64,000 bases of DNA, taken from the sequence record NC_023719.1; one strand, 5' to 3'. The notes under the pieces were generated by a model that was given only the letters and a program-made list of their open reading frames with translations, was not told where the DNA came from and searched no databases. Of the stretch, positions 1,761 to 34,711 are shown piece after piece; the stretch's first letter is position 1, and each line of letters opens with the position of its first letter. Made by a program: the position numbers and the translations under genes.

Positions 1761-1773
1761 AGAGGTAATTATA

Positions 1774-1992: not shown

Positions 1993-1993
1993 T

Positions 1994-3761: not shown

Positions 3762-3787
3762 AAAGAGATTGAAAATTCAATCTCTTT
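3762..3787. terminator. Bidirectional terminator between converging genes
   Basis: AAAGAGATTGAA-aa-TTCAATCTCTTT. Confidence 0.7.
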
Positions 3788-3965: not shown

Positions 3966-3986
3966 TTCATCACAATCCTTTTTAGT

Positions 3987-4025
3987 TTATATATTAATTA
4001 TATCATATTTTATGAAATATGTAAA
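3987..4025 (-). promoter_or_regulatory. sigmaA-like promoter, conserved phage class
   Basis: Minus strand TTTACA (4025-4020), 17 bp spacer, TG-A-TATAAT (4002-3997), then TAATATATAA. Confidence 0.8.
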
Positions 4026-4109
4026 CTGTTTTTTAATTAAAGTGTTTTAGTTCCTTTAATTTTAATAACTATTTTTTCTAAAATATATAAACAAGAGGAG
4101 GAGAGAAAA

Positions 4110-13956: not shown

Positions 13957-14298
13957 TTGTCAAATGAAATTAAAGAAGAACTAAGAAAAATAGCAGAAAG
14001 CAATTTGCCAGAATCCGTTATTGTTATAAGTTATATGGAACACATGTTAGATTTAGTTGCTACAATCACTAAAGAATTATCTAACTTGATAGATAAAGAA
14101 AAAATAAGTCCTGAATTACAACTGAAATTAGATATGTTAGAAAGTTTATTGCAATATAGTTCTGTAGATTTTGCTAATATTGAAAATCCAATGCAGGCTT
14201 ATAAAATACCTAAGACGATAGAGCTAAAAAATCAAACTAGAAAAGTGCAAGAACGATATTTAAAAAAGCAAATTGAAAAAGGTGTGTTTGGAGATTAA
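13957..14298 (+). CDS. Hypothetical helical protein, possible fibre chaperone
   Basis: TTG start after GAGGTGA; last gene before a terminator. Confidence 0.65.
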   Translation: MSNEIKEELRKIAESNLPESVIVISYMEHMLDLVATITKELSNLIDKEKISPELQLKLDMLESLLQYSSVDFANIENPMQAYKIPKTIELKNQTRKVQERYLKKQIEKGVFGD

Positions 14299-14326
14299 AG
14301 ATATGCTTTGGCATATCTTTAATTTT
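14294..14326 (+). terminator. Intrinsic terminator
   Basis: 13-bp stem ATTAAAGATATGC-tttg-GCATATCTTTAAT followed by TTT. Confidence 0.75.
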
Positions 14327-14500
14327 GTTTAATAATTATCAAAAACTTAAATAATTTAAAGACTACATAGTTAAATAATAATTATTTTACATACGACAAA
14401 CGCATAGGTTATAAAAATTTTAATGATTTATATGTTAATACTGACGATTGAGCAGTTTTGAACTATTAAGTTCGTGAAAATATATGAGGGGTGAAAAATA

Positions 14501-15883
14501 ATGACAGCTTCTTTCAACAGAAATAATAAAGGCGCATTACATGAGGATAGTAATATTTTATCAATTTTTTATGGAAAAGACGCATATTTGCTTGAAGATG
14601 AACTAAATGAAGCGCAATGGAACGTGATTGAGGCGCAAGCAGAAAACATTAGAGTTCAATATACTAGTGGTATTTTAAGTGAATTTGATGTCGTTCAAGT
14701 TGACAATAGTAATGCTTACATTGATAGTATTAATGGCAAACCGTTGACTTTATTGGTTGATGGGTATATTGTTAAAGTTGGTGGAAACAAATACGATAAT
14801 GAATTATCTAGCGATAGCAGAGTATTGTTTAATCCAAAACCTACATCAAGTGGTAACCAAAACCATTTACACTATCTTGAATTTTGGTTTGAGGCAGTAA
14901 GCTATGCGTCAACTTTAAGAAAGTTTGGCGGAGAAGATACTAAAGAGATCACAAATAAGATGTGGGATGATAGAGTTAAAGTTGAGACATCTAGAAGAAT
15001 CCAAATGAAGTGGAAAGTTTCTTATGCTCAAGATTTAACTTCTAAAGGTTTTGAAAATGTTGGAGATAACTTATGGAAAAAAGTTGGAGAACCTACTTAT
15101 AATACAACAACTGGCGCTTTAGTTAAACCTGGTATTTCTTATGCTATTATATTTGCTAATGGTACTAATAGTGTTTCTGGTAATCCAGTAGTTTATGAAC
15201 ACTCTAAAGCTGTCATGAAAGATAATAACATTAAGAAAGACTTAGAAAGTAAATTAGCGTCTTCTAGTGTTATTGATAAAATCAAGCAAGATTTAGCAGA
15301 TTTAGAAAATAATTTAACTGTAGAGTTAAATAAACTTAGAGATGATTTTGAAACTAATAAATTACTTGTTGCAAATCAACTAGATGAATTAAGGCAAGAT
15401 TCTATTCAAACTAAAGAATTACTTGATCAAATAAAAGCTGACGTTCAAAAGAATAAAGATGCAATAATTGCTATGGATAAGGCTATTACTAAAATACAAG
15501 TTCAATTAGAATTAGATGGTCGTGTACCTGGAAATGGTGGTACTTTCGCAGATACATTTGATGGAACTGGTAGTAGAATGACATTGGATAAAACTAAAAC
15601 AGATATTATTAATGCAATTAATGCTGGAACAACTATTTTACCAGTAGCTAGTACAGAAGGCTTTGTTGTTGGTACACAAATCACTATTTTTGATGATATT
15701 GCTAACGAAGAAGCTATAATTGTAGCTATTGGTGATGGAACTATAACTATCGCTGCTACTACAAATGCTTACAAAAAAGGTGCAAAAGTTGTTCGTAGTA
15801 ATGTAATAATTGATACAGACAAGGCTGAAATGGGGACTGGTTATTGGCAGACTTATAACGTTGAAGTAATTGAGGTGTTGTAA
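14501..15883 (+). CDS. Virion structural protein with the shared LLEDELNE N-terminal domain and a coiled-coil stalk, 460 aa
   Basis: N-terminal ~240 aa clearly similar to the 6783 product; heptad region KIKQDLADLENNLTVELNKL... Confidence 0.75.
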   Translation: MTASFNRNNKGALHEDSNILSIFYGKDAYLLEDELNEAQWNVIEAQAENIRVQYTSGILSEFDVVQVDNSNAYIDSINGKPLTLLVDGYIVKVGGNKYDNELSSDSRVLFNPKPTSSGNQNHLHYLEFWFEAVSYASTLRKFGGEDTKEITNKMWDDRVKVETSRRIQMKWKVSYAQDLTSKGFENVGDNLWKKVGEPTYNTTTGALVKPGISYAIIFANGTNSVSGNPVVYEHSKAVMKDNNIKKDLESKLASSSVIDKIKQDLADLENNLTVELNKLRDDFETNKLLVANQLDELRQDSIQTKELLDQIKADVQKNKDAIIAMDKAITKIQVQLELDGRVPGNGGTFADTFDGTGSRMTLDKTKTDIINAINAGTTILPVASTEGFVVGTQITIFDDIANEEAIIVAIGDGTITIAATTNAYKKGAKVVRSNVIIDTDKAEMGTGYWQTYNVEVIEVL

Positions 15884-15901
15884 AGTAAAAATCTACTTTA
15901 C

Positions 15902-15964
15902 ATAATTAATATTTATCCTTCTATGTGAAAATCAACATACCATAGAAGGGTTTATGTTAATTAT
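15902..15964 (+). repeat. Conserved intergenic long hairpin, copy 1
   Basis: ATAATTAATAT-tt-ATCCTTCTATG...CATAGAAGGGT-tt-ATGTTAATTAT. Confidence 0.8.
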
Positions 15965-16001
15965 CCGTTACATATTGCTTTCAAAATAAGGAGGATTTTA
16001 G

Positions 16002-19000
16002 ATGGTAAAATACTATTATGATAAATACGCATCAATTAGTACTACCAAGTATGTAGAACCCGCGTGGATTAATATGAACGCAACTGGCTCAACCGTAGCT
16101 TTTACTCTCAAACCTAAGAGTTACTCGTTTAATTCAACTACAGGAAAGTTCAGTTTGTCTACTGATACATGGGGCCAAGCTGAAGAAACAATTCAAGTTG
16201 GACAAACTTGTTATGGATATGCTAGTGGAGAACTTTATGAATATACAGCTATACAATCAGCATCTTCAGGATCTGTGCCAATTTCTCTTTATAAAAAAAG
16301 AGAAATAGATACTACTACCCAAACAACATATTCAAAAGGTGCTTTATTACAGTCTAATATTGTTGCAGAAGATGGAACTTACCCTGTCAATGGACGTCAC
16401 ACTGATGGCTATTGGTATGTAAGAGGTTCTATTGCTAATACTGCGCCAACAGTTCCAGGTGTATTTGTATATCCTGAGGGGTCATTGGAAGTAGGTGATT
16501 CTAAAGTTGTTTCGTGGGGAGCATCTACAGATATAGATGGAAATTTGTCTAAATATATCTTAGAAGTATCTATTGATAGTGGTACTTGGACTCAAATAGG
16601 AACTCCAACTACAAATACCTTTAATTATACTATCCCAACAGCTGTTAATATTAAATTTAGAGTTAAAGCTCAAGATAATGATGGTTTAGAATCTGGATAT
16701 AGAGAAAGTTCTGTATTTACAGTACAAACACTAAATTCTAATATGGTAATTGATAAACCTTATTTAGTAGATGGTAATGGTGGTAGGAAATTAGTACTAT
16801 TAGAAAACGAAGCATTAGTTTTAGGACTTAGAGACTCCACCAACAATAGAGTTTATTGTTACAAATCAGTTGATAAAGGTTTAACTTGGTCAAAAATATT
16901 TGATAGAGGCATAGTTTCTAAAGATATTTCTTTAACTACTCAAGGGAATTTTATTCATTTATTGATAGCTGAATCAACAACAGTGTCTTATTATAAGTTG
17001 AACGAACTAGGGGAAGTTATTTCTTCTAATCTTTCAATTGATACGGGACAAATTGCAATTAGCAATATATCTTTAATAATCAATCCAGCAAATGGTTACT
17101 TGCATGCAGTATGGGCAAGTAAAGATTCAACGTATTCGAATTCATATAATCTCCGATATGCAAATAGTACTGACGGTGGGAGTACATGGTCGAGTGTAGA
17201 GCAAATAACTAAAATTAATAATACAACATATCATTTTGAATCCCCATCTATTGCAATTCATCAAAATGAACCTCTAATTGTATGTCAAACAAAAGGGTTT
17301 TATTTGAATGGTTCTGTAGTAGGTAGCGGCAATTCTTATGGTATCTTGCTATTGAGTAAAAATGCATCCTTAACTACAGATACTTCTAGTAATATTAATC
17401 TCCCATGGAAACACAAACTCATATATGGTGTTGATTCGTACGTACAGTCTAATCCTTCTGTAGTAACAAGTAAGGAAGGCGTCATTCACGTAACGTGGAC
17501 AGGTGCAGATAGTGCTTTTCCGTCAATACAAAATCTTAGATATAATTGGTCAACTGATGGCGGAGTAACTTGGAAATCACAAGTTACAAATAAAATAACA
17601 AATGAAACTACTAAAAATCAACTTTATCCATCAATAACTATTGATAAAACTGAAACCGCGCGTATAGTATGGCAAAGCGAAAACGGCGTTAATCAATATA
17701 CATTAAGACAGCTAAAAATGCTAAATGGTCAAGGAGAGTTAGATAAACCAGCTAATATTAAAACTGTAATAGGAGTATCGCCAGCTACGCTTTACGATCC
17801 TTCTTTGTTGGGTAAATTTGGAGATGTACCGTTTACAGTCTTTAATAAAACGTCTAATGATTCAAAATTATTAAGTGTTGACTGTATTGGTGAATATACG
17901 ATAAATAAAGCTCCAACAAAACCCGGCGCTTTTACTCAACCTACTGAAACTATTTTAGAGATAGGAGATTCTAAAATAATTTCATGGGGAGCGTCTACAG
18001 ATGAAAATGGAAATCTCTCTAATTATGTTTTAGAAGCTTCTATTAATAATGGCGCTTGGATACAAATGGGAGCCCCAACTACAAATACACTTACCCTTAC
18101 TATACCGAGTGTTCCTTCTGGCGCCAGCGCTAAGTTTAGAGTTAAGGCTGTTGATACTGAAGGCTTGACATCAGAATATACAGAAAGTTCTGTATTTACA
18201 GTAGTAGTGCCAACTTATTATTGGAGCAAATATTCTGTTATAGAAGAAAGACCATTAATTATGAGCATGTATAGTTATACTCCTTGGGATAATGAAACTA
18301 CTTTAGCAATTTCAAATTATGAAGGCAGGTTGTACTCTAGTTATATCGTTGAAGACAAGAAATTTAAACTTGTATCACTTGTGTCTTCAATTGCTTCGCT
18401 AACTGTAGGTACATTTGTATATTTAGATGCAGGTAATGATAGAATATCTAGTTTATATGTTGCTTATAATGATGGATTTAATATAGCTTTTAGCGATACT
18501 GTCTATGAATTGGTAGAAGGAGATTTGGTCTATAAAAAAGGTGATTTATTACAATCTGATATTGTAGGCGTATATAATGCATACACTAATAATGCTAGAA
18601 ATTCAGATGGTTTTTGGTATGTTAGGGGCGCAAGTACAAAAATCACTACCCCTGGCGCTTTTACCCAACCTACTGGGACTTTAGAAATAGGTGATTCTAA
18701 AATTATATCTTGGGGAGTAAGTAGTGGTGTTTTTTCCAAATATATTTTAGAAGTATCAATTAATAACGGGAATTGGACTAAAATAGCTGAACCAACATCA
18801 AATAGTTACACTTATGTTATACCTACAAGTGTCAGTCTTAAATTCAGGGTTAAAGCTGTTGGAGCTACTAACATAGAATCAGAGTATGTAGAAAGTAGTA
18901 TATTTACAGCTCAACCGCCACAGTACTATTATGATAAGTTTGCTTCAATAAGTAATACTCAATATGTTGATAACGCTCCATGGGAATATCTGGGACCAGG

Positions 19001-20624
19001 GCGAGCTTGGTATTCAGCTACGTACACGTCTTATGGAATTGATTCAAATGGTAAATATTACAATAGTGGTACACTATGGGGAGGGCCTGTGAGTTCAGGT
19101 TCTATGTCATATATTACTGGTGGAGCCGGTAATAATTCCACAGTAACGCGATATACCGCATTAGAATCTACGCCTAATCCAGTAATGGAAATAGCAATCG
19201 ACGTCCATATAAAACGAGCAAGTAATATTACACAAACAACGACATGGTCAAAAGGTTCTTTGATGCAAACCGGAATAATTGGAAGTGCTACATCATATCC
19301 AACTAATGGAAGACACACTGATGGTTATTGGTATGTGCGTGGTTTACGAGTTAGTCAATCAATTGCTCCTCCAGGAATATTTAATATAGCATCAGATAAA
19401 GGTAAATTTTTACCAAATGAAGTTGTAAATATATCATTTGATTCTTCTTCAGCTTCAAATATTTCAATTTATGAAGTAGATTATAGATATAATGAAAACT
19501 CTTGGATTCCATTAGATTACAATAACACTTTAGCGAGAACACTAACTACAACGACTGATAAATCACTTAAAACCTTACAATTCAGAGTAAGGGTTAAAGA
19601 TAAAAATAATGTATACTCGGATTATGTTTATTCTGACATTTTCAAAATAGATCATAATACTGCGCCAGTTATTACCATAACTAGCCCAACTAATGATATA
19701 ACTTTATACGAAAATGATTTTTTAAATGTTGTTGGAACAATTAACGATATTGACCAGGATCAAAACTTAATCATATATTGTCAAGTTAATAATCAAGAAA
19801 AGCACATAATATTTGAAAAACAAAGTTCAACTCAAGCACAATTTGCGAAACAATTAAAATTTACAAATGGGAAATTGCATAATGAAGATATAGAGATATC
19901 AGACGCTTTAAGCGAAGATTTATTGCATAGTATAAAAATATGGGTAGAAGATAGTGAAGGTGGAAAATCTAACATTGAAACACGCTCGTTTTATGTGGAA
20001 CTTAATCACATACCTTTAATTTCTATAAATGAAATCATTCCAAACGGAATTATTGATAGTGACAAATTTATTATTTCTGGAACAACCTCTGATCAAGATG
20101 AGGATTCTATTATTAAAGTGACTTATAAAATTAATAATGGAATTATTACAGAGATTTATAGTGGTGCTGGCGGAAATTGGCAATTTGAAGTTTCATTAGT
20201 CCAATTGAAGGTTGGAGAAAATAGAATCACTGTTGAAGCGACCGATAACTATAACGCTAAATCTGTTAAAATTATTAAACTTAATAAAAATGAAATCAAT
20301 AAACCTATTTTAGAATCTATTGCTAGATATAAAATAGAACCTCCAAAAGAAGTAGTAAAAGGAGTATTGTTATTCATCCAAAGAGATGAACAACTTGATA
20401 TAAAAGTAGAAATCTCCATGAATATGTTGAATGAACAAGAAAACTTTATTGAATTAAATCCCGAAAACTCTGCCCCTATGCCAAATAAAATTGGTATAAT
20501 AGAGGATACTTTCCATCATGAGGTTCTAGAAAACAAAGAAAACATTATTTTAAAAATAACAGCACTAAGACAAAATGTAGATGATAATTACAAAATTCAT
20601 TTAATTTCAGGTGTAGTTGAGTAA
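16002..20624 (+). CDS. Mosaic tail-appendage/fibre protein A (Fn3 + BNR/Asp-box propeller + Ig-like + conserved C-terminus), 1540 aa
   Basis: Fn3-like FRVKAxD modules; Asp-boxes SVDKGLTW, STDGGSTW, STDGGVTW; 3x GxWYVRG cassettes; C-terminus ...LISGVVE. Confidence 0.75.
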   Translation: MVKYYYDKYASISTTKYVEPAWINMNATGSTVAFTLKPKSYSFNSTTGKFSLSTDTWGQAEETIQVGQTCYGYASGELYEYTAIQSASSGSVPISLYKKREIDTTTQTTYSKGALLQSNIVAEDGTYPVNGRHTDGYWYVRGSIANTAPTVPGVFVYPEGSLEVGDSKVVSWGASTDIDGNLSKYILEVSIDSGTWTQIGTPTTNTFNYTIPTAVNIKFRVKAQDNDGLESGYRESSVFTVQTLNSNMVIDKPYLVDGNGGRKLVLLENEALVLGLRDSTNNRVYCYKSVDKGLTWSKIFDRGIVSKDISLTTQGNFIHLLIAESTTVSYYKLNELGEVISSNLSIDTGQIAISNISLIINPANGYLHAVWASKDSTYSNSYNLRYANSTDGGSTWSSVEQITKINNTTYHFESPSIAIHQNEPLIVCQTKGFYLNGSVVGSGNSYGILLLSKNASLTTDTSSNINLPWKHKLIYGVDSYVQSNPSVVTSKEGVIHVTWTGADSAFPSIQNLRYNWSTDGGVTWKSQVTNKITNETTKNQLYPSITIDKTETARIVWQSENGVNQYTLRQLKMLNGQGELDKPANIKTVIGVSPATLYDPSLLGKFGDVPFTVFNKTSNDSKLLSVDCIGEYTINKAPTKPGAFTQPTETILEIGDSKIISWGASTDENGNLSNYVLEASINNGAWIQMGAPTTNTLTLTIPSVPSGASAKFRVKAVDTEGLTSEYTESSVFTVVVPTYYWSKYSVIEERPLIMSMYSYTPWDNETTLAISNYEGRLYSSYIVEDKKFKLVSLVSSIASLTVGTFVYLDAGNDRISSLYVAYNDGFNIAFSDTVYELVEGDLVYKKGDLLQSDIVGVYNAYTNNARNSDGFWYVRGASTKITTPGAFTQPTGTLEIGDSKIISWGVSSGVFSKYILEVSINNGNWTKIAEPTSNSYTYVIPTSVSLKFRVKAVGATNIESEYVESSIFTAQPPQYYYDKFASISNTQYVDNAPWEYLGPGRAWYSATYTSYGIDSNGKYYNSGTLWGGPVSSGSMSYITGGAGNNSTVTRYTALESTPNPVMEIAIDVHIKRASNITQTTTWSKGSLMQTGIIGSATSYPTNGRHTDGYWYVRGLRVSQSIAPPGIFNIASDKGKFLPNEVVNISFDSSSASNISIYEVDYRYNENSWIPLDYNNTLARTLTTTTDKSLKTLQFRVRVKDKNNVYSDYVYSDIFKIDHNTAPVITITSPTNDITLYENDFLNVVGTINDIDQDQNLIIYCQVNNQEKHIIFEKQSSTQAQFAKQLKFTNGKLHNEDIEISDALSEDLLHSIKIWVEDSEGGKSNIETRSFYVELNHIPLISINEIIPNGIIDSDKFIISGTTSDQDEDSIIKVTYKINNGIITEIYSGAGGNWQFEVSLVQLKVGENRITVEATDNYNAKSVKIIKLNKNEINKPILESIARYKIEPPKEVVKGVLLFIQRDEQLDIKVEISMNMLNEQENFIELNPENSAPMPNKIGIIEDTFHHEVLENKENIILKITALRQNVDDNYKIHLISGVVE

Positions 20625-20638
20625 ATAAATCTAGTTAA

Positions 20639-20701
20639 ATAATTAATATTTACCCTTCTATGTGAAAACTAAAGTAGTATAGAAGGGTTTATGTTGATTA
20701 T
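20639..20701 (+). repeat. Conserved intergenic long hairpin, copy 2
   Basis: ATAATTAATAT-tt-ACCCTTCTATG...TATAGAAGGGT-tt-ATGTTGATTAT. Confidence 0.8.
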
Positions 20702-20748
20702 TACGTTACATATAGATTTTTACTAAATAATTGTAAGGAGGTTTCAAA

Positions 20749-23700
20749 ATGGTAAATTTTTATTACAACAAATATAATACAATTGAAAAATATGATATAG
20801 TCCAGTCATATTCTTTGAGATCAAGAACTTTTGAAGAAGGCGGTAGTTCTATAAGAAATGGGATAAGAATAATGCTTGAAGCTATTTCTTCAGGCGAATA
20901 TTTTGAAACTATGTATAGACAACTTACCGAATCGTCACCCGGCAATTATGTGCCTAATGATTCAGTTACTATTAGGGATGATGGTACTGATGATAGATAC
21001 TATGAAGCTCCACCTATGGAATTTGTGAGTGGTAAACTGTACTACATGAAAACGAACAAAAGATATTTAGGTTTCGTTTTAACAAAAGGTTCTGCAACCG
21101 GTCTTGAAACTTATCATTATTGGACAGGCGAAATTTTCACATTGCAAAGGGGTAATTACACTTATTCACAAGGTACTTTAGTGAGTAGCAATATCATTGC
21201 GGAAGATGGAGTTCTACCAGCTAATGGACGTCATACAGATGGATTTTGGTATGTTAAAGGAACTCAAGTCTCTTCATTACCATCTGGCACTATAATTGTT
21301 TCGGATAAATTTACAACACAAAATCCTTCATCTAGAAAATTAGTTCGCTTAGGAAATGGATGGTTACTATCTTTAATGGTACGACAAAACTCCAGCATGA
21401 ATATAATGGTGTCTAGAGACAAGGGTAATACTTGGACCTTTAGTGGATCAGTAAGTAACAACACTATAAAGGATGCAGCAGTTACAGCGGTTGGTAATGA
21501 TGCGGTTATCGCACTTCAAAATGACGGCGAAATCCAAGTATGGAAATGGTCTAGTACTACTAGCTCAAATTCTTATGTAGGTGTTATAGTGAATGGAGTA
21601 CAATTATCTAGTGATGGAATATCTATTTTTTATGATAATATAGAAAAAGTATTATTTGCAACATGGGCTAGAAAAAATGGTAGTAGTTACGCTATTTACT
21701 ATGCTAAATCATTTGATAATGGTGCCACTTGGCCAAGAAATAATATAGTGTTTTCAATAGATGTAGCTGGATATGATTATACTTGCCCATCAATTGTAGC
21801 CCATGGTAGCAATGCTTATATAATAGCTCGTTATGTTAGAGGTACAAATAATTCAATTGTTTACGCAAAGAGCGTTAATAAGGGTGATAGCTTCATAACC
21901 GCAGAAACACTCTATGATGCTGGAATCTATCTTGCGACATCGCCAATAGCAGTTGTTGATAAAAGCGGGAGAGTACATGTAACTTGGAATGGACATGAAT
22001 CAACTAATGCTTCAATTCATGTGATGTCTCGTTATTTAGATGATTCAACTAATAGTTGGATAGAGCCTACTACTAAAATACCACAAAGTAATAACTTAAG
22101 TAAATCAACATTGACGGTTGATCAAAATGGAAACGTTTATGTTATTGGAGAAAATTATGGAAATATAATTAGTTACGTATCAAAAGATAGAGGAATTACT
22201 TGGTCGACTTCATCTACAATTGTTGCAAGCGGTTCAATGTCTCAATCTTTATATGACCCTACTTGGAATATTAATTTTAGTGGAGATCTTAACTCACCAC
22301 CTCCATTTATTTATAGAAAAACAAGTGATACAGTAATTGAATATAAGGGTACATTTACTACTAATGACCCACCTCCAACACCTGGGGTGTTTACTCAACC
22401 TACTGGAAGTTTAGAAATAGGAGATTCTAAAGTAGTTGCATGGGGAACATCATTAGACGCGGTAAAATATATTCTTGATGTTTCAATTAATGGTGGAACT
22501 TGGAATCAAATTGGAACGCCAACAACTAACAGTTTCACATATACTATTCCAACAGCTACAAGTGTTAGATTCCGTGTTAAAGCGCAAGGAAGCAATGGGT
22601 TGGAATCAGGTTACCAAACAAGTAACGTATTCACTGTTACAGAGCCAATGTATTATTGGGGTAAATACAATACAATTAGCACTCCAAGTACTTCTTATAA
22701 TTTAACGTGGAATTTCCAATTTGAAATGAATTGGAGTGATGTTGATTCAAGTCGCGCAATACATGGTTACACAAGTTACACTGTTGGTTCAAACGGTGTA
22801 CCAGCAGAATCAGGTTCTTATGTATTGAAATATTATGATGATATTTCTGGATCTATAACTTTATACTTTGTTAGCGGTGGAAATTTATATAGAGACACTG
22901 CGTCCTCATCTAGTAGAACTCACTCTAGATATATAGCTACAATTAAGGATGTAAGTACTGGATATACTTATTCTAGAGGTTCATTTATTGAAAATGTTGT
23001 AGGTGGCTATAGTGCTTATACAAATAACTCTAGGAACCCTGACGGATATTGGTATGTGAGAGGCAGTAGAACTAATCAATCTATTGTACCAACTGGAGCA
23101 TTTAATATAGCTTCTAATAATGGTAAATTTAGACCAAATGAAGTTGTAAATATATCATTTGGAGCATCAACAGCCTCTAATATTTCATTGTATGAAGTAG
23201 ATTATAAATATAATGAAAACTCTTGGTCTCAGTTAGCTTATAATAATACTTTGGTAAGAACATTAACTACAACAACTGATAAGTCTCTTAAAACCTTACA
23301 ATTTAGAGTAAGAGCGAAAAATACAAGTAATGTATATTCAGATTACATTTACTCTATTGTTTTCAATATAGATCATAATTCTGCACCAGTTTTAACTTTA
23401 AATAATCCAAATAATGGTATAACTTTATATGAGAATGATTTTTTAAATATCAATGGTACGATTAATGATATTGATCAGAACCAAAATTTAAATATATACG
23501 TTCAAATAGATAATTATAAAGAACAAGTGCTAGAGACAATAACAAGTGGAACTCAAATACCATTAACTAAGCAATTGAAATTTAAAAATGGTAAACTATT
23601 TAGTGGTGATTTTGAAGTATCAGATGTTTTAAATGAAGAGTTAGAGCATAGTATAAAAGTTTGGGTAGAAGACGATGAGGGTGGTAAATCCAATGTTGAG

Positions 23701-24345
23701 ACTCGTTCGTTTAATGTCGTACCTAACCATTTGCCTTTAATATCTATAAACGAAATAAATATTGATAGTATTATTGATACCGATAAATTCATTATTACTG
23801 GAATCGTATCAGATCAAGATGAAGAACCCACTATTTCACTAACATACCACATCAATGATGGAAATAAAACCGAGATTTACAACGGTACAGGCGGAACTTG
23901 GAGTTTTGAAGTTTTTCTATCTCAGTTAAATGTAGGAGAAAATGCGATTACTTTAGAAGCTACTGATAACTTTGGAGCTAAACTTATAAAGACTATAAAA
24001 CTTAATAAAAATGAGGTTAATATCCCAATTTTAGAATCAATTGCACGCTACAAATTAGATCCTCCAAAAGGCGTTGCAAAAGGTGTACTATTATTTATTC
24101 AAAGAGATAAAGATTTAGAAACTAAAGTGGAATTGTCTATGACTATGAAGAATGAAAACGAACAGTTTATTGAATTAGTACCAGAAAGTACTTCTCCAGT
24201 AGTAAATAAAGCTGGTATTTTAGAAGATACTTATCATCATGAAGTTATAGAAGAAAAAGATAATATTATTCTGAAAATAACAGCAATAAGACAAAATGAA
24301 AGTACGGATTTTAAAATACGTTTGATTTCGGGAGTAGTAGAATAA
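20749..24345 (+). CDS. Mosaic tail-appendage/fibre protein B, 1198 aa
   Basis: Asp-boxes SRDKGNTW, SFDNGATW, SKDRGITW; Fn3 modules; 2 cassettes; same C-terminus as A. Confidence 0.75.
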   Translation: MVNFYYNKYNTIEKYDIVQSYSLRSRTFEEGGSSIRNGIRIMLEAISSGEYFETMYRQLTESSPGNYVPNDSVTIRDDGTDDRYYEAPPMEFVSGKLYYMKTNKRYLGFVLTKGSATGLETYHYWTGEIFTLQRGNYTYSQGTLVSSNIIAEDGVLPANGRHTDGFWYVKGTQVSSLPSGTIIVSDKFTTQNPSSRKLVRLGNGWLLSLMVRQNSSMNIMVSRDKGNTWTFSGSVSNNTIKDAAVTAVGNDAVIALQNDGEIQVWKWSSTTSSNSYVGVIVNGVQLSSDGISIFYDNIEKVLFATWARKNGSSYAIYYAKSFDNGATWPRNNIVFSIDVAGYDYTCPSIVAHGSNAYIIARYVRGTNNSIVYAKSVNKGDSFITAETLYDAGIYLATSPIAVVDKSGRVHVTWNGHESTNASIHVMSRYLDDSTNSWIEPTTKIPQSNNLSKSTLTVDQNGNVYVIGENYGNIISYVSKDRGITWSTSSTIVASGSMSQSLYDPTWNINFSGDLNSPPPFIYRKTSDTVIEYKGTFTTNDPPPTPGVFTQPTGSLEIGDSKVVAWGTSLDAVKYILDVSINGGTWNQIGTPTTNSFTYTIPTATSVRFRVKAQGSNGLESGYQTSNVFTVTEPMYYWGKYNTISTPSTSYNLTWNFQFEMNWSDVDSSRAIHGYTSYTVGSNGVPAESGSYVLKYYDDISGSITLYFVSGGNLYRDTASSSSRTHSRYIATIKDVSTGYTYSRGSFIENVVGGYSAYTNNSRNPDGYWYVRGSRTNQSIVPTGAFNIASNNGKFRPNEVVNISFGASTASNISLYEVDYKYNENSWSQLAYNNTLVRTLTTTTDKSLKTLQFRVRAKNTSNVYSDYIYSIVFNIDHNSAPVLTLNNPNNGITLYENDFLNINGTINDIDQNQNLNIYVQIDNYKEQVLETITSGTQIPLTKQLKFKNGKLFSGDFEVSDVLNEELEHSIKVWVEDDEGGKSNVETRSFNVVPNHLPLISINEINIDSIIDTDKFIITGIVSDQDEEPTISLTYHINDGNKTEIYNGTGGTWSFEVFLSQLNVGENAITLEATDNFGAKLIKTIKLNKNEVNIPILESIARYKLDPPKGVAKGVLLFIQRDKDLETKVELSMTMKNENEQFIELVPESTSPVVNKAGILEDTYHHEVIEEKDNIILKITAIRQNESTDFKIRLISGVVE

Positions 24346-24394
24346 ATATTAATGGAAGAATTCTCGTAATAACAATGAAAGAAGGAGGATAATA

Positions 24395-27300
24395 ATGGCT
24401 ATTATAAATAAAACAACTCCAGAAAGTAATCAACAGATACAAACAGTGGCATTTAAATTAGATAATTTATCTAAGTTAAATAACGTAACAGTAAATACTG
24501 GTAACGTTGAAGTTGTTAGTGTTGTAGGGGATACTGTTACAGTCAAATGCATAAATGGCGCAAGCGTTAGACAAATACAGACGGGTGGACAATATATCCC
24601 TGCGGATTCTAAGACAGAATCTGGGTATAATAGAGTTATTGGTGATCCAAATGCAGTAACTTTGCCACAATCATATACATTTGAAACGAGTGATGGATAT
24701 AAAGGGACTTTATATTTAATTGGGAATCCTTATTGGATTTACGATGATCAGGGCAACGGCATTGGGCTTGAAGGATGGTATTCTGGAACAGTCTATAGAC
24801 CTGAATCAGATACTCGCACATATGAATATTATTATTCATATGTGCTTACATTCGATTATGTTATAAACTCAGCTCCTACCGCTCCTAAAATAACAGTGCC
24901 CTCTATTCAATTTGAACATGGAGATAAACACTATATTTCTTTTGATTCTACAGATGCTGAAAATGATGTATTAACATATACATTAGAGACTTCTTATAAT
25001 AATGGTTCTTCGTGGAGTCAAATATATAGTGGTACTGCTAAGACGTATCAATACACAGTTCCATCAAATCAAACTCAAGTAAAATTTAGAGTAAAGGCAA
25101 CTGATGGAAAAGTAGTTACTGCATATACTGAGAGTTCTAATAAAACTATACAAGAAGTGATGTATTTTTGGAATAAATTTAACAATTATTATAATCCACC
25201 TACAGCATATAAGGGAGCTTTATTCGCAAAAGATGTTCCTATGGATGAAAGGGCTCCCGGAGACTCACCTCCACCAAATAGGCCAAGTGAAGTAGTGGGG
25301 AACCTTTATTATGAATATTATTGGGAAGAAAGGGCAGATGGTTACTATCTCCATGCAAACCTCTATGAATGGATTACAACTCCCGGCGGTGATATGAAAG
25401 GTTCATTAGCTGAAGCAAATATACAAGCAAGCTTTAATACTTATCAACATGCTCAAAAAAATCCCGATGGTTTTTGGTATGAACGAGGTCAGAGAGTTTT
25501 ATCGGAAGATATAACTCCTCCAATTATTGAATTAACAGAACAGAAAAATTTTGGGCCAACTTCTACAATTACAGTAAAAACATATGATTTATCTAGTATT
25601 ACGAAATTAAAATGGGCAAAAGGACAACAAAGCGCAACATATTTTGCATCAAATGGAACAAATATAACAAATGGAAGTTTTACAGTTTCTGAAAACGGAG
25701 ATTATACTGTTTACGCTGAAGATGAGAAAACCAATAAAGCTATTCAAGTATTTACAGTTAAAATGGTTAATACTGCACCTACAGCACCAACTTTGAATGT
25801 ACCAACTATTCAATTTGAATATGGAGATAAACATCAAGTTACGTTTAGCTCTACAGATGCTGAAAATAACACTATACAATACACATTAGAATCATCTAAT
25901 GATAATGGAAATGAATGGCAAGTTATATATTCTGGACAAACTAAGTCTTTTGAATACACAGTTCCTTCAGATAAAACTCAAGTTAAGTTTAGAGTAAAAG
26001 CAAGTGATGGTATTTTAGAAACTGGATATACTACAAGCGAAAATAAAACAATACGCGAAGTTATGTATTATTGGGCAAAATACAATAATGTTCAAGAAAT
26101 GCAATATACAATAAAATATAATACACCGGAAGTTATAGTAAGTGATTTATCATATCAAGGTCAAAACTATAACACTAGTGGTCATCCTACTTATTCTTAC
26201 GATCCACCTTACGGTTTTATAACTCCAAAAGGTACGGGTACTATTATTGGGGATTACGCTGGTAGATATATTCCAGGTACTGTATATGCTACGCCTAGTG
26301 ATGGTTATTACTATTCTGATTATTTGTATATAAAATCAATATCTTATGATAGTAATTATACAAAACAAACAATTTCAACTCAAATATTACAAAGGGTTCC
26401 AAACGGTTTACAAGATAAAATGGGGGCTTATTTATCAACAGTTACTGGTGGATATAATGCTTATAAAACTGGAGTTAAAAATCAAGATGGATATTGGTAT
26501 GTTCGTGGATTAAGAGTTATTCAATTTATCTCACCGCCTGGGGCATTTACTTCTCCTAGTTTAGGGACAAAATTGAAACCTAATCAATCTATTACTATAG
26601 GCTTTTCAGCTTCGCAAGCTACAAATTTAAGTGTTTATGAAGTTGATTATAAATATAATGCTAATTCTTGGGTTGCGTTACCTAGTAATTTAAACCTTAC
26701 TCGCTCATTAATAACTTCATCAGATAAATCTTTAACATCTATGCAATTTAGGGTTAGAGCAAAAAATACTAGTAACACTTATTCAGATTATATTTATTCA
26801 GAAGTTTATGTGTTGGATCATAATATTTCACCAACAATAACTCTAACTAGTCCTTCTAATGATGTGATGTTATATAAAAACGATATATTGACTATTAGTG
26901 GCGAAGTAAACGACGTTGATCAAGAGCAAAATGTATTAGTTTATTATCAAATAGATGATTATGCACATGAATTTGCAATAGCAGGTGAAAGTTCAACGCA
27001 AATATTATTATCTAAAAAACTACAACTTAAAACAGGCAAATTATATGATGGTGATATAGCAGTAACTGAAGTTTTGAAATCTGATAAAGTTCATAAATTA
27101 AAAGTTTGGGCAATAGATAATGTTGGTGGTATATCGGATATTATAGAACGTACTTTCACAGTGTTTCCTAACCATGATCCTTTGTTAACTTTAAATGAAA
27201 TAATTCCAAGTGGCGTATTAGATAGCGATAAGTTTACTATTTCTGGTTCAGTATCTGATGAAGACGTTGATTCTGTAATTTCAGTTACTTACTGTATAAA

Positions 27301-27790
27301 TAATGGAGACAGTACTGAAATCTATACTGGTGCCGGTGGCAATTGGGAGTTTAATGTTTTTCTATCTCAATTGAAGGTTGGAGAAAATGATATAATAATT
27401 AATGCGACTGATGATTATGGAGCTAAATATACTAAAACAGTTAAGTTAAATAAAGATGAAATTAATGTTCCTGTTTTAGAATCAGTTGCTAGATATAAGA
27501 TAGATCCGCCAAAGGGTACAGCTAAAGGTATTTTATTGTTCATCCAAAGAGATTCTGAATTAGAAACAAAAGTAGAATTATCGATGACTATGAAAAATGA
27601 AGAAGAGCAATTTGTTGAAATACTCGCAGAGAATACAGCCCCGCTTCCAAATAAAAATGGTTTAGTAGAAGATACTTATCACCACGAGGTTATAGAAGAT
27701 AAAGAAAATATTATTCTTAAAATAGCTGCGCTGAGACAAGACGAAAACAGCGATTATAAAATCCACTTAATCTCAGGTGTTGTTGAGTAA
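24395..27790 (+). CDS. Mosaic tail-appendage/fibre protein C (no BNR propeller), 1131 aa
   Basis: Duplicated Fn3-like APTAP...FRVKA module, 2 cassettes, same C-terminus. Confidence 0.75.
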   Translation: MAIINKTTPESNQQIQTVAFKLDNLSKLNNVTVNTGNVEVVSVVGDTVTVKCINGASVRQIQTGGQYIPADSKTESGYNRVIGDPNAVTLPQSYTFETSDGYKGTLYLIGNPYWIYDDQGNGIGLEGWYSGTVYRPESDTRTYEYYYSYVLTFDYVINSAPTAPKITVPSIQFEHGDKHYISFDSTDAENDVLTYTLETSYNNGSSWSQIYSGTAKTYQYTVPSNQTQVKFRVKATDGKVVTAYTESSNKTIQEVMYFWNKFNNYYNPPTAYKGALFAKDVPMDERAPGDSPPPNRPSEVVGNLYYEYYWEERADGYYLHANLYEWITTPGGDMKGSLAEANIQASFNTYQHAQKNPDGFWYERGQRVLSEDITPPIIELTEQKNFGPTSTITVKTYDLSSITKLKWAKGQQSATYFASNGTNITNGSFTVSENGDYTVYAEDEKTNKAIQVFTVKMVNTAPTAPTLNVPTIQFEYGDKHQVTFSSTDAENNTIQYTLESSNDNGNEWQVIYSGQTKSFEYTVPSDKTQVKFRVKASDGILETGYTTSENKTIREVMYYWAKYNNVQEMQYTIKYNTPEVIVSDLSYQGQNYNTSGHPTYSYDPPYGFITPKGTGTIIGDYAGRYIPGTVYATPSDGYYYSDYLYIKSISYDSNYTKQTISTQILQRVPNGLQDKMGAYLSTVTGGYNAYKTGVKNQDGYWYVRGLRVIQFISPPGAFTSPSLGTKLKPNQSITIGFSASQATNLSVYEVDYKYNANSWVALPSNLNLTRSLITSSDKSLTSMQFRVRAKNTSNTYSDYIYSEVYVLDHNISPTITLTSPSNDVMLYKNDILTISGEVNDVDQEQNVLVYYQIDDYAHEFAIAGESSTQILLSKKLQLKTGKLYDGDIAVTEVLKSDKVHKLKVWAIDNVGGISDIIERTFTVFPNHDPLLTLNEIIPSGVLDSDKFTISGSVSDEDVDSVISVTYCINNGDSTEIYTGAGGNWEFNVFLSQLKVGENDIIINATDDYGAKYTKTVKLNKDEINVPVLESVARYKIDPPKGTAKGILLFIQRDSELETKVELSMTMKNEEEQFVEILAENTAPLPNKNGLVEDTYHHEVIEDKENIILKIAALRQDENSDYKIHLISGVVE

Positions 27791-27808
27791 ATAAATTCTA
27801 CTTTAAAT

Positions 27809-27868
27809 AATTAATATTTATCCTTCTACGTGAATTCTAAAATCACGTAGGGGGATTTGATATTAATT
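27809..27868 (+). repeat. Conserved intergenic long hairpin, copy 3
   Basis: AATTAATATT-t-ATCCTTCTACGTGA...TCACGTAGGGGGAT-tt-GATATTAATT. Confidence 0.75.
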
Positions 27869-27954
27869 TATCAGATACATAGATAAAATAAGTAAATTAT
27901 TGAAAAACAACAGGAAGATAACAATAGAGAAAAGAAATAGAGGAGGAAATTTTG

Positions 27955-30900
27955 ATGGTGAAATATTATTATGAAAGGTTCACAGCTAACGCTTCTTACG
28001 CAGAATCTTCTTCTGTTGAAAACTTTGGAATAACTTATATAGCAGCAGCTTATAAGCATGAAAGATATAGTTTTGATACAATCAATAATAAATATAATGT
28101 TGTATCTGGTACTCATATCTCAGTGGGAGATGGATTATATTTACCAACTACAATGTATGCAGTTTCTAGTGATGGTACAACGCTAGATATATATGAACTT
28201 CAAGAACCAGATCCCGCAAGTACAGAAGCAACTGCTAAAGTTTACTGGTCAAGGAAATCTACCTCTAGGTCGGTAGCAACTTATAGTAAAGGTAATCTAG
28301 TTCAAAGCAATATAGTTGCAGAAGATGGTAATTACCCAACTAATGGTCGCCATACTGATGGTTACTGGTATGTTAGAGGCGCTCAAATTATACCAGAAAC
28401 TATTACAACAGAGCTGTTTACAACACTTGGCAATAATAAACGGAAATTAGTTCGCCTCCCTAACGGATGGCTTGTATCAGCTGTTGCTGGAGCTGATAGT
28501 ACAAATAAAAATATATTAGTATCTATATCGAAAGATAATGGTAATACTTGGCAAGAATTATGGAGAAAATCAGCTGAAAACCCAGATGTAGCGTTAGTTG
28601 TTATTGGTAGTGATGTTGGTATATTATACGGATTGAGAGCATCTATTCAATACGAAGTTTATTTTAGAAAATTCAAAAGTGATACTAGTACATTTGATAA
28701 TGATGTTACTATTGTCAATACTGTGCAAACAATATCCCAAAATACGCTAACAGCTTATTACGATAAGGGTTCAAACAATCTACATGTAGCTTGGTCTCAA
28801 TATAATAATGGATATAATCTAGCTTACAGTAAGTCAAACAATAAAGGTCTTAGTTTTTCATCTTATAAAGAGATTGTCAATGTTGGAGATTCTAGATACA
28901 GCGCAACTTATCCTTATATTACATCTGTAAATGGGAATTTGAAAATTTTCTATAAACTTATACAAACTAATCAATATATCATGATGCTTAATAGCGTAGA
29001 TAATGGTGAGACTTTTAGTAATCCGTCTACTGTTCATAGTGGAGGAGTCGCTAATAGTTCTAGATTGAGTTCGCCATCAGCAGTGGTAGATCAAACTAAT
29101 CGTTTGCACTTAGTCTATTCGGATGGGGAAAATGGTGAATTTGGTGAAAATCAAACGCCGCATATAATTCATCTTTACTCTAATAACGGAGGAGCTAATT
29201 GGACTAGAGCTTCTGGTTCAGCTCCGTTAAATTTGTACAATAACCAAGAAGATCCAAGTATAGCTGTGGATAAGCGCGGATATGTTTATATTGCTGGTTC
29301 TACTGACGGCGGTGGGGTTAACGCTAGTGTTAATTTATTTATATCAAAAGATAGAGGGGAAACTTGGGGTAATGTTATCAAAATAAGTGATAAAGCTAAC
29401 TACCCTTCGTTGATGCAAGATGATGATTTCGTTGGAATTCTTGGCGACATCCCACCAATGATTTATGTGTCTAACGATACAACAAGATCAATTAAATTTA
29501 AAGGAACTTATACTGTAGAAGAAGCACCAACTATGCCAGGAACATTTACCCAGCCTACTGGTACTTTAGAAATAGGTGATTCTAAAGTTGTATCTTGGGG
29601 AACATCAAATGATGTAAATGGAAACCTTTCCAAATATATCTTAGAAGTATCTATTAATGGCGGTTCTTGGACGCAAATAGGAACTCCAACTACAAACACT
29701 TTTAATTATACTATACCAACAGCTACTAGTATTAAGTTTCGAGTTAAAGCTCAAGACACTGCTGGTTTAGAGTCTGGATATAGAGAAAGCTCTGTATTTA
29801 CGGTAACAGATCAAATGTACTATTGGAGTAAATATAATTCCGTTAAAAATGAAGAATTAAATAAAAACGATCTTAATTATGGAACTATTGTTGAGTATTC
29901 ACATGAATCTAGTTATTCCGATACTATAAGCAAAGTTATTGGAGCAGTTTGGAACTCTATCATTAAATATAATGAAAACCCGTTTAATCAACCCCCATAT
30001 GAAAAATTTGTATACACTGATTTAAAAATAGTTGATGGACAAATGACATTATTGGGTGAAAGTTTATCTATTAATTCATCATCAACTCTACTTGAGATGG
30101 GGAAATACTATTATTTCAATTCATATAATGGTATTTACGCAATAAAGACTCAATTACCCGAAGCTTCAGCTGTAGTTGATAGAAGTATTCATATATATTC
30201 TTTATCTCCTTCAGGAGTAATTTCTTATACGAAAGGCAGTTTGGTTCAAAGCAATATTCAAAGTATATATAATGCTTATCAAAACGACGCAAGAAACCCT
30301 GATGGATACTGGTACGTGAGGGGTAGTAGAGTTAGCCAAACAATTTCACCTCCAGGAGTATTTAATATACCATTAGAAAATAATCAATTAAAACACAGTC
30401 AACCAGTTACTATAACATTTGGGGCATCGAGTGCTTCTAATTTATCTTTATATGAAGTTGATTATAGATATAATGGTGCCGGCAATTGGTTAGCATTGTC
30501 TTATAATAATACACTAACTAGAAGTTTAACTATAACTAGTGATAAAAGTTTATTAAATATACAATTTAGAGTAAGAGCTAAAGATACTAATAATATTTAT
30601 TCAGATTACGTTTACTCTGACACTATTTTAGTGGATCATAATAATGCACCTACTCAACCAGGGGATTTTGTAAAGCCTACAGGCGTATTAGAAATTGGAG
30701 ATTCTAAAGTATTTATAGCTGGAATGTCAATTGACATAGATGGTAACCTATCTAAATACGTATGGGAAGTATCTCTAAATAACGGAGCATACTCTATAGT
30801 TGGAGAAAGTGAAATTCCAAGCTTCACTTATATAATACCAAGTTCTACGAGTTTAAGAATGAGAGTTAAAGCAGTAGATTCTAAAGGTGCTTCAAGTGGA

Positions 30901-33435: not shown

Positions 33436-33971
33436 TGGCTTTAGAATATAGAGAAAGGCAACCCGATGGAACTTTAGGTGGTAAACCAGTCAAAGTAGGT
33501 ACTGGTTTATCGCTTGAAGAAAAAATTGAATCACTCGGTGGAGAGTTAGCTGTAGAGAAAATTGAAGGTATTCAAAATGCAACGACTGTTAATGAACTTG
33601 GCGGTCAATTAGCATTAGAAAAAACAAAAGGCATTGAGAATACTAAAACCATCAATGAACTTGGTGGTGAATTAGCTCTAGAAAAGATAAAAGGTATGGA
33701 GAATGCTCAAACTATCAATGGGCTTGGCGGAGAATTAGCCCTAGAAAAAATTAAGGGTATTCAAAATACTTCACTTATTAATAGTTTGGGTGAAGAATTA
33801 ACTCAAGAGAAAATCAAGGGTATTCAAAACACATCTATTATTAATGGTCTTGGGGAGCAGCTTACTCAAGAAAAGATCAAAAGCATTCAAAAAGATGCTA
33901 TTATTAATGATCTTGTATTGGCTGTAGAGGAGCTGAAAGCAGAAGTTGCAGCCTTAAAAGGAGGTGAATAA
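33435..33971 (+). CDS. Coiled-coil tail-fibre assembly-type (XkdW-like) protein with six 21-aa repeats
   Basis: G[GE][EQ]LxxEKxKGxxNxxxINxL x6 (33537-33914); sits between the fibre genes and xkdX. Confidence 0.6.
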   Translation: MALEYRERQPDGTLGGKPVKVGTGLSLEEKIESLGGELAVEKIEGIQNATTVNELGGQLALEKTKGIENTKTINELGGELALEKIKGMENAQTINGLGGELALEKIKGIQNTSLINSLGEELTQEKIKGIQNTSIINGLGEQLTQEKIKSIQKDAIINDLVLAVEELKAEVAALKGGE

Positions 33972-33973
33972 AG

Positions 33974-34114
33974 ATGGCATTTTGGAGCATGGCTTATAAA
34001 TACAAATGGGTAACAATTGATCAATTAAAATTAGTAGTTAAAACTGAATCGAATCCTTTTGGTGAAATTACACCTGAAGAGTTCAAAACAATCACAGGAA
34101 AAGATTTCGAATAA
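33974..34114 (+). CDS. xkdX: XkdX-family small phage protein (not in the ORF track), 46 aa
   Basis: MAFWSMAYKYKWVTIDQLKLVVKTESNPFGEITPEEFKTITGKDFE; the ITPEEFKTITG motif is typical of XkdX; GGAGGTGA RBS. Confidence 0.85.
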   Translation: MAFWSMAYKYKWVTIDQLKLVVKTESNPFGEITPEEFKTITGKDFE

Positions 34115-34119
34115 AAAAC

Positions 34120-34146
34120 AAAGAGACCTTATTGGTCTCTTTTTAT
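34120..34146. terminator. Bidirectional terminator
   Basis: AAAGAGACC-ttatt-GGTCTCTTT(TT). Confidence 0.7.
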
Positions 34147-34491
34147 TTTTTCTAAGTTAGCGCCATCAATCAAAGTATAAAAAGCGCTACATGTATCGCA
34201 TAACTTTGGTTTATTTAAGAAGTCTTCTTTATGATTTATGATATATGAAGTTTCCCCGCAATGAGGACATTTAATTACATAATCAAATTGAATAACGTTA
34301 TTATTCTGCATTTTTCTAATAATACTATCTACAGAATGAGCTGGTATATCGTTTCTGCCAGTATGTTTTTTGCACCATTTAGTTAGACCGCTAAGTCTAA
34401 CTAAATCAACTCCTTCTAGTTTAAAAATAGAAATTATTTCCTCAAACATACGATCTAAAATTGGATCTCTAATGATTTCAAACCCATCCAT
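34129..34491 (-). CDS. Hypothetical Zn-ribbon protein (CPHC...CDTC)
   Basis: Two CxxC pairs at the C-terminus; start moved to the ATG 8 nt after GGAG. Confidence 0.65.
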   Translation of the reverse strand: MDGFEIIRDPILDRMFEEIISIFKLEGVDLVRLSGLTKWCKKHTGRNDIPAHSVDSIIRKMQNNNVIQFDYVIKCPHCGETSYIINHKEDFLNKPKLCDTCSAFYTLIDGANLEKIKRDQ

Positions 34492-34711
34492 GTTATCAAC
34501 TCCAAAGTATATTTTCATATTAAAAATAGAAAGAGATGAGTGTTTTTATAACTTCTAATAATTAAAATAAAAATAAAATATTTAAAAATAATTAATTTGT
34601 AATATAAAAGTGATAATAAGGATTATTATTGTTATGATTACATTAAAAATGATAGTATTTTTATCTAAAAAACTACTCTTAAGAAGATTTATATATAAGG
34701 AGTTGGAATTT

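Follow-up and report, generated by a model that had tools for sequence, protein, structure and literature searches.

Conserved sense-strand RNA hairpins in the spacers of the fibre-like gene cluster of Bacillus phage G

Three conserved hairpins between fibre-like genes

The stretch of 64,000 nucleotides (nt) analysed here (the window) corresponds with 100% identity to bases 310001-374000, + strand, of the genome of Bacillus phage G (JN638751.1 / NC_023719.1), and within its same-strand gene run gp420 to gp429 it contains three copies of a real, selected, sense-strand RNA hairpin, which is private to the fibre cluster of this phage and absent from its relatives. The copies are located 3' of gp423, gp424 and gp426 and 5' of gp424, gp425 and gp427, respectively (Table 1). 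Their job is most likely the punctuation of the fibre operon message, and most likely they are ordinary punctuation, such as a weak stop, an end protector or a cutting site, and not a new kind of RNA. Attenuation, processing and stabilisation are all known kinds of function, and the result is thus an incremental one. The initial annotation had proposed a candidate new cis-acting RNA; the structure is indeed a selected one and matches no Rfam family, but three paralogous copies in one genome, whose conceivable functions are all of known kind, do not make a new class. To our knowledge, phage G is the only cultivated megaphage.

The copies had been described in the initial annotation as an outer A-U stem, a small U-rich internal loop and an inner stem of 11-14 base pairs (bp) at 15902-15964, 20639-20701 and 27809-27868, and the RNA folds agree with both the architecture and the positions, the paired region of copy 2 being 20638-20702. 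In copies 1, 2 and 3, respectively, outer stems of 10-12 A-U/G-U pairs are followed by inner stems of 11, 11 and 14 bp and terminal loops of 15, 15 and 9 nt, and the internal loop is UU/UU in the first two copies and U/UU in the third. The total helix is 22, 23 and 24 pairs, arranged as two coaxial stems of about two turns, and the loop of copy 2 is able to make a mini-helix of 4 bp. Folding yields -22.3, -24.4 and -26.4 kcal/mol (on the + strand z = -5.3, -5.1 and -7.2 against shuffles, with 0 of 200 shuffles equally stable), and the G-C-closed cores of the inner stems by themselves have -9.4, -10.7 and -16.0 kcal/mol; the - strand folds are poorer (z from -1.9 to -5.0). The hairpins start 18, 13 and 18 nt downstream of the upstream stop codon and end 37, 46 and 86 nt before the next gene start, and the spacers holding them (118, 124 and 164 nt) are the only long ones in the gp423-gp429 module. 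For copy 3, the sequence homology begins at 27807, 2 nt ahead of the paired region.

The hairpins are 72-82% identical in pairwise comparison, but the identity is not evenly distributed, being 91-94% in the first 33 aligned columns and 56-71% in the remaining ones. For comparison, where the flanking paralogs are best conserved, their four-fold degenerate sites reach an identity of only 42-56% against 37% by chance; with the synonymous sites of the neighbouring paralogs so near to saturation, the hairpins are conserved well above the neutral expectation and clearly under selection. The flanks are just 60-70% identical, and when copy 1 is compared with the other two, the homology starts only about 35 nt 5' of the hairpin and fades soon past it, leaving an island of conservation. 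Furthermore, the 5' arm and the first loop bases (GUGAA) are unusually conserved whether paired or not, and a 22-mer of the 5' arm occurs 3 times on the + strand against 0.03 expected by chance.

The strand can be read from the changes among the copies. On the + strand 67 of 68 cells pair, versus 59 of 68 on the - strand; the difference is due to the eight wobble cells, each of them G-U on the + strand and hence A-C if read on the other. Of roughly seven independent changes on one side of a pair, none yields A-C (about 1% in a sign test by hand). Since all the one-sided changes give G-U on the + strand, the element most probably acts as sense-strand RNA, and the earlier argument for an RNA rather than a DNA structure holds. 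Two pairs are changed on both sides (U-G / C-G / U-A and U-A / U-A / C-G), exactly as had been listed before along with the recurring G-U wobbles. The term "covarying" used for them lacks statistical support, as 116 of 500 column shuffles reach the observed covariation score (n=3 sequences). Covariation is not demonstrated, because there are only three sequences and no relative carries the element; conservation is the stronger argument.

Four other candidates were examined and rejected. Extrusion of a DNA cruciform was discarded in view of weaker DNA folds (-10 to -14 kcal/mol) and an imperfect - strand. The top of the 5' stem could pair alternatively with the TTACATA box further downstream in copies 1 and 2, but a change in copy 3 breaks this pairing. 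Mini open reading frames of 9-11 codons starting in the 3' arm (ATG, ATG and TTG) have a length typical of chance in AT-rich DNA, and their Shine-Dalgarno-like spacing is too short. The complementarity of the loop to the downstream ribosome-binding region amounts to just 5-6 nt of A/U and was judged to be chance.

Possible roles in the fibre message

The best reading of these hairpins, which we hold tentatively and at somewhat less than even chances, is a leaky, elongation-factor-dependent intrinsic terminator (attenuator) that doubles as a 3'-end protector. The stem-loop would form in the sense-strand RNA of a long late transcript, probably running from gp423 to gp429. The G/C-based inner stem would fold in the nascent RNA, the hybrid over the ensuing U-rich run (UUUAUGUU or UUUGAUAU) would be weak, and some of the polymerases would release. 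In the released or trimmed RNA, the A-rich 5' arm could then pair with the U-rich run to complete the helix of 22-24 bp, which would shield the upstream message from 3' exonucleases. Each hairpin would in this way lower and set the message level of the next fibre gene, giving gp423 > gp424 > gp425/426 > gp427-429. Read-through from upstream, RNA 3' ends at the hairpins and an effect on the fibre ratios are what we infer from this scheme. If the hairpins create or protect RNA ends, they would offer a simple handle on the dosing of alternative host-binding proteins; if not, they still illustrate clearly how an intergenic structure under selection has been carried along by gene duplication.

The layout is that of a terminator. 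The stem-loop is stable, is on the transcribed strand 13-18 nt past the stop codon and has an inner stem with a C-G-rich base, directly 3' of which lies a U-rich run (UUUAUGUU in copies 1 and 2, UUUGAUAU in copy 3), and the 5' arm is an A-rich run matching it, as in the phage's own terminators after gp422 and gp429. Of the 8 nt past the inner stem, 5-6 are U in the first two copies; the third has about 4-5, the figure varying with the choice of the stem end. The longest run is three. The earlier statement that there is no U-tract, and hence no classic terminator, is therefore half right: 5-6 U in 8 are present, but they are among the weakest U-runs of the phage. A simple terminator scan with a loop limit of 8 nt missed the hairpins, whose loops all exceed that limit.

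Among the nearest known counterparts are the B. subtilis terminators stimulated by NusA and NusG, in which weak A-U/G-U bottom pairs and interrupted U-tracts still work with the help of these factors (Mandell et al. 2021, PMC8060035). As in those, a sense-strand stem-loop follows soon after a stop codon, the stem is lengthened at its bottom into the upstream A-tract by weak A-U/G-U pairs, and the U-rich tract is interrupted. The phage G hairpins differ in their far larger loops, in an uninterrupted U-run of just three, in the absence of the TTNTTT pause motif from the tract and in the conservation of the primary sequence. A NusG-family paralog, gp582 (L014 5521-6123), is encoded by phage G itself. 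It combines an NGN domain with a KOW motif, falls short of the NusG equivalog cut-off and is matched by the antiterminator models UpxY, LoaP and RfaH as well. Given the weak terminators of B. subtilis that NusA and NusG assist, and given gp582, it is plausible that the hairpins are leaky stops open to tuning.

Several facts weigh against this reading. Loops of 3-8 nt are found in 122 of the 131 terminator-like hairpins of the phage after + strand open reading frames, and in 190 of 205 in a second scan, in which a 15-nt loop occurs only three times. A leading U-run of five or more is present in 83 of the 131, compared with only three in the fibre hairpins, and by U-tract score copies 1 and 2 rank at the 2nd and 18th percentile of the 205; copy 3 fails a rule of 5 U in 8 when counted from the last G-C pair. 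Terminators usually preserve shape and not sequence, and the identity of 91-94% in the first 33 columns is beyond what termination alone explains. In addition, no evident promoter is located downstream of the hairpins, so that termination would have to be partial, and a search for expression or transcriptome data of phage G returned none.

Part of these facts would suit a processing signal of the type of the T7 R-sites or of phage SP82, which we consider possible but on the whole unlikely. The host ribonuclease III (RNase III) would read the helix of 22-24 bp and make a single cut on the 3' side near the U-rich internal loop, by which the polycistronic fibre message would be split; the upstream part would keep a protective 3' hairpin, and the downstream part would gain a monophosphate 5' end near a strong Shine-Dalgarno sequence. 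The helix length (22, 23 and 24 bp) and the two stems around a 2x2 or 1x2 U-rich internal loop are both what such a site has. The ideal substrate is 22 bp, and cuts of a single strand at irregular sites leave stabilising 3' hairpins (PMC3867540); the SP82 targets of the Bacillus enzyme have internal loops and receive one cut on the downstream side (PMC1935012), and in B. subtilis the classic sites take the form of stable stem-loops containing small internal bulges (PMC4838370). The known phage sites, namely the T7 R-sites and the SP82 early mRNA sites of the Bacillus enzyme (Panganiban & Whiteley 1983 and Mitra & Bechhofer 1994, as cited in PMC4838370 and PMC1935012), lie between cistrons as hairpins of about 60 nt. 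They have an upper and a lower stem, a small internal loop and a helix of about two turns and are present in several similar copies per phage, all of which resembles the phage G element. The narrow specificity of the enzyme could also account for the conservation of the sequence, and the loop size and U-tract are atypical among the terminators of the phage. Moreover, the 3' arm of copy 3 has undergone an insertion and a deletion, yet the copy retains an outer helix of 10 bp at the expense of its U-tract, which slightly favours a function of the long helix. On the other side, the phage G hairpins are in a late structural operon and not in early transcripts, and the link to the enzyme is by geometry alone; helices of up to about 22 bp are attained by A-tract/U-tract terminators of the phage as well. 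The enzyme has few targets in Bacillus (PMC4838370), which makes for a low prior, and three sites in a genome of 497 kb are unusually few for a general processing system. The earlier suggestion of an RNase III substrate thus fits in geometry (22-24 bp, two helices and an internal loop), but nothing here separates this enzyme from the alternatives.

Whether transcripts begin at the hairpins was considered as well. A sigma-A-like promoter lying across the stop codon of the preceding gene and the beginning of the 5' arm would start transcripts at the U's of the internal loop, and the inner stem at the 5' end would guard the fibre message from a 5' exonuclease. Hexamers are present in front of all copies (TTGTAA-17-CATAAT at 15878-15906, equivalent hexamers at 20617-20643 and TTGAGT-17-AATAAT at 27783-27811), the best conserved block would span about -40 to +20 of the putative start, and the element tracks the downstream genes. 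But the spacer between the hexamers, 17, 15 and 17 nt, is not kept, the hexamers are unlike the phage's own strong promoter consensus, and about as many sigma-A-like matches are expected from shuffled sequence (107) as were found (109). Furthermore, the 3' arm of the outer stem is conserved, with pair-keeping changes only, and the 5' arm must accordingly be transcribed, that is, by read-through from upstream. A start site at the hairpins is for these reasons very doubtful.

A further motif, CGTTACATAT, follows copies 1 and 2 directly, and a diverged form, CAGATACATAG, follows copy 3. It resembles the -35 box of the many early promoters of the phage (AAAACAGTTTACATA, about 15 nt, TATAAT), but no -10 box is found 3' of it at the spacing used by these promoters, and TACATA-N11-TAAAT occurs only 3 times and is not a general class. 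The SPO1 late -35 box is similar to CGTTACA; a late-promoter reading was rejected since no matching -10 follows. A general late-promoter motif was dismissed too, as the 4.2-fold enrichment of TACATA upstream of genes is due to the early-promoter -35 box (GTTTACATA-N15-TATAAT).

The conserved 5' arm and GUGAA loop bases, together with the domains of gp582 and their match to the UpxY, LoaP and RfaH models, might also speak for a sequence-specific binding site of a phage factor. The hairpin would then load the NusG paralog gp582, by analogy with the recruitment elements of specialised NusG paralogs or with elements of the nut/put type, or be the site of an RNA-binding regulator. With only three genomic copies, none of them in other late operons, and a partner that is a candidate only, this is highly improbable. 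We also give little credence to a wider proposal, in which a regulatory RNA specific to phage G, read by sequence and shape by a host RNase III of narrow specificity or by gp582, would have evolved as one fibre gene became four and would set the ratio of alternative receptor-binding fibres from a single operon of 20 kb. As for further sites of the 5' arm, its AT-rich 17-mer was rejected as a genome-wide site, because the matches with three or fewer mismatches (66 vs 64 on the two strands) reflect low complexity. A motif ATTA(A/T)TATTTAGTG, whose AT-rich half resembles the 5' arm, recurs intergenically, 6 times on the + strand (genome 78276, 82592, 155598, 199957 and 415505 among them) and 2 times on the - strand.

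Relatives and the history of the cassette

A covariance model built from the three copies was run over both strands of the whole genome of 497,513 bases. It gave 90.8, 92.4 and 84.6 bits for copies 1, 2 and 3 on the + strand and 33-38 bits on the - strand, and no fourth copy was found in the genome, everything else being ordinary terminators of 28.5 bits or less, the best of which is the A-tract/stem/U-tract terminator between gp250 and gp251. No Rfam family reached its gathering threshold over the window, and at E <= 5 there were only chance-level matches, for example of copy 3 (27808-27869) to mir-135 (24.7 bits versus 59.2 needed), which reflects the generic shape of a long hairpin alone. 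Scans with an exact 20-mer and a gapped stem pattern found nothing but phage G in IMG/VR and no hairpin in a metagenome collection; besides phage G there were two chance matches of the 20-mer, both without a hairpin.

Homologues of the first 150 gp424 residues are encoded by 38 prophage-like IMG/VR contigs, and the 300 C-terminal residues shared by the fibres recur in two metagenome contigs, a Lysinibacillus genome contig and several IMG/VR loci. No hairpin is present in the 38 loci with the fibre N-terminal domain or in three further loci with the C-terminal one. Among isolated phages in GenBank, gp423 and the fibre N-terminal domain match phage G alone. In 18 of the 19 loci that were read, the fibre gene has its ribosome-binding site in the end codons of the preceding gene and begins 4-6 nt past the stop codon, leaving neither spacer nor hairpin. 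This preceding gene is homologous to the C-terminal third of gp423, and where the downstream part is readable, the fibre stop codon overlaps a gp428-like start, with a gp429-like gene next in two loci. From these homologies, the common module consists of a gp423-like gene, one fibre gene and gp428-like and gp429-like genes, tightly coupled. A compact gp423-like/fibre/gp428-like module with 47-51% identity was also observed at 1593-4276 of the Lysinibacillus sp. contig (L059, NZ_JBNNMG010000041.1), which fits the published reassignment of the host of phage G to Lysinibacillus.

Within phage G, the hairpin is absent from the gp425/gp426 junction (49 nt), where the initial annotation had already noted that the gene at 24395 lacks the element, and from the gp427/gp428 overlap. 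It tracks downstream genes whose products start with MVKYYY or MVNFYY (3 of 3) and is absent before gp426 and gp428; the type of the upstream gene shows no such match. Since the relatives have one fibre gene, coupled junctions and no hairpin, the cassette is a novelty of phage G tied to the multiplication of its fibre genes. Where the relatives have a compact, translationally coupled module of an adaptor, one fibre and two small genes, phage G has four giant paralogs with their private RNA punctuation. The simplest history seems to be a single insertion at the gp423/fibre junction, followed by multiplication of the unit of hairpin and fibre gene. A short stretch of matching nucleotides is common to the end of gp423 and the ends of the fibre genes, where it lies in different reading frames; it may have guided this multiplication.

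The same facts could be taken to mean that the hairpin is mainly a feature of the DNA, a duplication scar or recombination linker copied with each fibre gene and having no RNA function of its own, its likeness being kept by gene conversion or by use as a short homology patch for swaps of fibre modules, as is the case for the PeSL cassettes of T4-type phages (PMC4122927, PMC2839356). The copies lie exactly at the paralog borders, in a repeated block of about 110 nt that takes in the final codons of the preceding gene, uniformity is greater in the 5' part than in the 3' part, the relatives with their single fibre have no cassette, and the match between the ends of gp423 and of the fibre genes could have steered unequal crossing-over. 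We regard such an origin without RNA function as improbable. The bias of the one-sided changes to G-U on the + strand would be unexpected for an element acting in DNA only, flanks of 60-70% identity are a poor substrate for a conversion confined to about 100 nt, and direct repeats would favour deletions.

The likeness to the PeSLs (PMC2839356, PMC4122927) lies in a short, conserved stem-loop that recurs in intergenic position at the borders of variable genes and may have a dual role in expression and module shuffling. But a PeSL joins the stem-loop to a working early promoter and occurs in many copies in hyperplastic regions, whereas in phage G the half that defines a PeSL is missing, as the -35-like CGTTACATAT has no -10 box and there is no recognisable promoter, and the three copies are all at the fibre paralog borders of one cluster, with no relative carrying the cassette.

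Units that look like PeSL-type stem-loop plus promoter cassettes are found in the early regions of phage G, where many near-identical copies comprise a terminator stem, a T-run, an A-run, CAGTTTACATA, about 15 nt and TGTGATATAAT. Examples outside the window are at L014 24870-24960, 26150-26240 and 32070-32160 (genome 448900, 450180 and 456103), and some of their spacers are identical. The U-rich run, the A-rich run, the CAGTTTACATA box and the spacing match the fibre cassette, which has CGTTACATAT at the corresponding place, and the fibre cassette may have descended from one of these generic cassettes.

Intercistronic stabiliser hairpins such as the REP elements in the malEFG message of E. coli can block 3' exonucleases and give unequal expression within an operon. 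The phage G element is likewise a stable intercistronic hairpin, but it is confined to a single locus, whereas REPs form genome-wide families. Upstream of gp191 and gp193 (L008 32880-33010 and 33440-33560), another private family of duplicated cassettes was observed, in which an AT-rich block precedes a canonical terminator hairpin (GAAAGTC.GTT ... AA.TGACTTTC plus a T-run). The stems of its two copies differ by pair-keeping changes alone.

Neighbouring genes and other repeats

The features of the locus are listed in Table 1. The canonical terminators after gp422 and gp429 are likely the upstream boundary and the end, respectively, of the gp423-gp429 transcription unit.

Table 1. Hairpins, flanking motifs, genes and terminators of the fibre-like cluster (window positions)
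Feature	Position	Strand	Remarks
Canonical terminator after gp422	14295..14330	+	12-bp stem, 4-nt loop, tail TTTTGTTT
gp423	14501..15883	+	gene upstream of copy 1; C-terminal third homologous to the gene directly 5' of the fibre gene in related prophages
Conserved 5' flank, copy 1	15872..15901	+	last codons of gp423, stop, 18-nt spacer
Hairpin copy 1 (gp423-gp424 spacer)	15902..15964	+	outer stem 15902-12/15954-64, inner stem 15915-25/15941-51
Conserved 3' motif CGTTACATAT	15966..15975	+	directly 3' of copy 1
gp424	16002..20624	+	1540 amino acids; fibre/adhesin-like paralog with BNR propeller and Ig-like domains; between copies 1 and 2
Conserved 5' flank, copy 2	20608..20637	+	end of gp424, stop, 13-nt spacer
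Hairpin copy 2 (gp424-gp425 spacer)	20638..20702	+	outer stem 20638-49/20691-702, inner stem 20652-62/20678-88
3' motif CGTTACATAT, second occurrence	20704..20713	+	after copy 2
gp425	20749..24345	+	1198 amino acids; paralog downstream of copy 2; no hairpin 3' of it
gp425-gp426 junction	24346..24394	+	49 nt without hairpin; homology to the other junctions ends just past the stop codon
gp426	24395..27790	+	1131 amino acids; paralog without the MVKYYY N-terminal domain; upstream of copy 3
Conserved 5' flank, copy 3	27774..27808	+	end of gp426, stop, 18-nt spacer
Hairpin copy 3 (gp426-gp427 spacer)	27809..27868	+	outer stem 27809-18/27859-68, inner stem 27820-33/27843-56
Diverged 3' motif CAGATACATAG	27872..27882	+	after copy 3
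gp427	27955..33435	+	1826 amino acids; paralog downstream of copy 3; 3' end overlaps the start of gp428
gp428 and gp429	33435..34114	+	small genes, also 3' of the single fibre gene in relatives
Canonical terminator after gp429	34114..34151	.	A-tract/stem/U-tract; faces gp430 on the opposite strand

The products of gp424, gp425, gp426 and gp427 (1131-1826 amino acids) all fall within a single PHROG and contain BNR/sialidase-type propellers, immunoglobulin (Ig)-like domains and a glucodextranase-B-like domain; they are named the "gp424 adhesion protein family" in a recent paper (PMC12484599). The label "fibre" is a fair one for them, their presence in the virion being predicted only. The domain formed by the first 150 residues of gp424 recurs within gp424, gp425 and gp427, as the MVKYYY ... 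NGRHTDGYWYV domain is also encoded internally at 18921-19343, 22858-23076 and 30937-31359, respectively, and it is thus a repeated module and not solely an N-terminal anchor. The N-terminal 170-250 residues of gp423 are common to gp420 (54% identity), gp431 (38%) and gp211 (25%). The regions of this type, at 6783-7529, 14501-15250 and 34709-35230 of the window and at L008 43584-44189, may represent a common attachment domain of several large tail proteins. Finally, 42800-61100 of the window is taken up by a very large array. It consists of some 25-30 paralogous units, each 550-690 bp long (families D1-D7 and D9), and every unit resembles a small gene that has a conserved motif of the C..CP(I/V)C type as well as a C-terminal one encoded by TGGAAAGAAAATGATAGATA.

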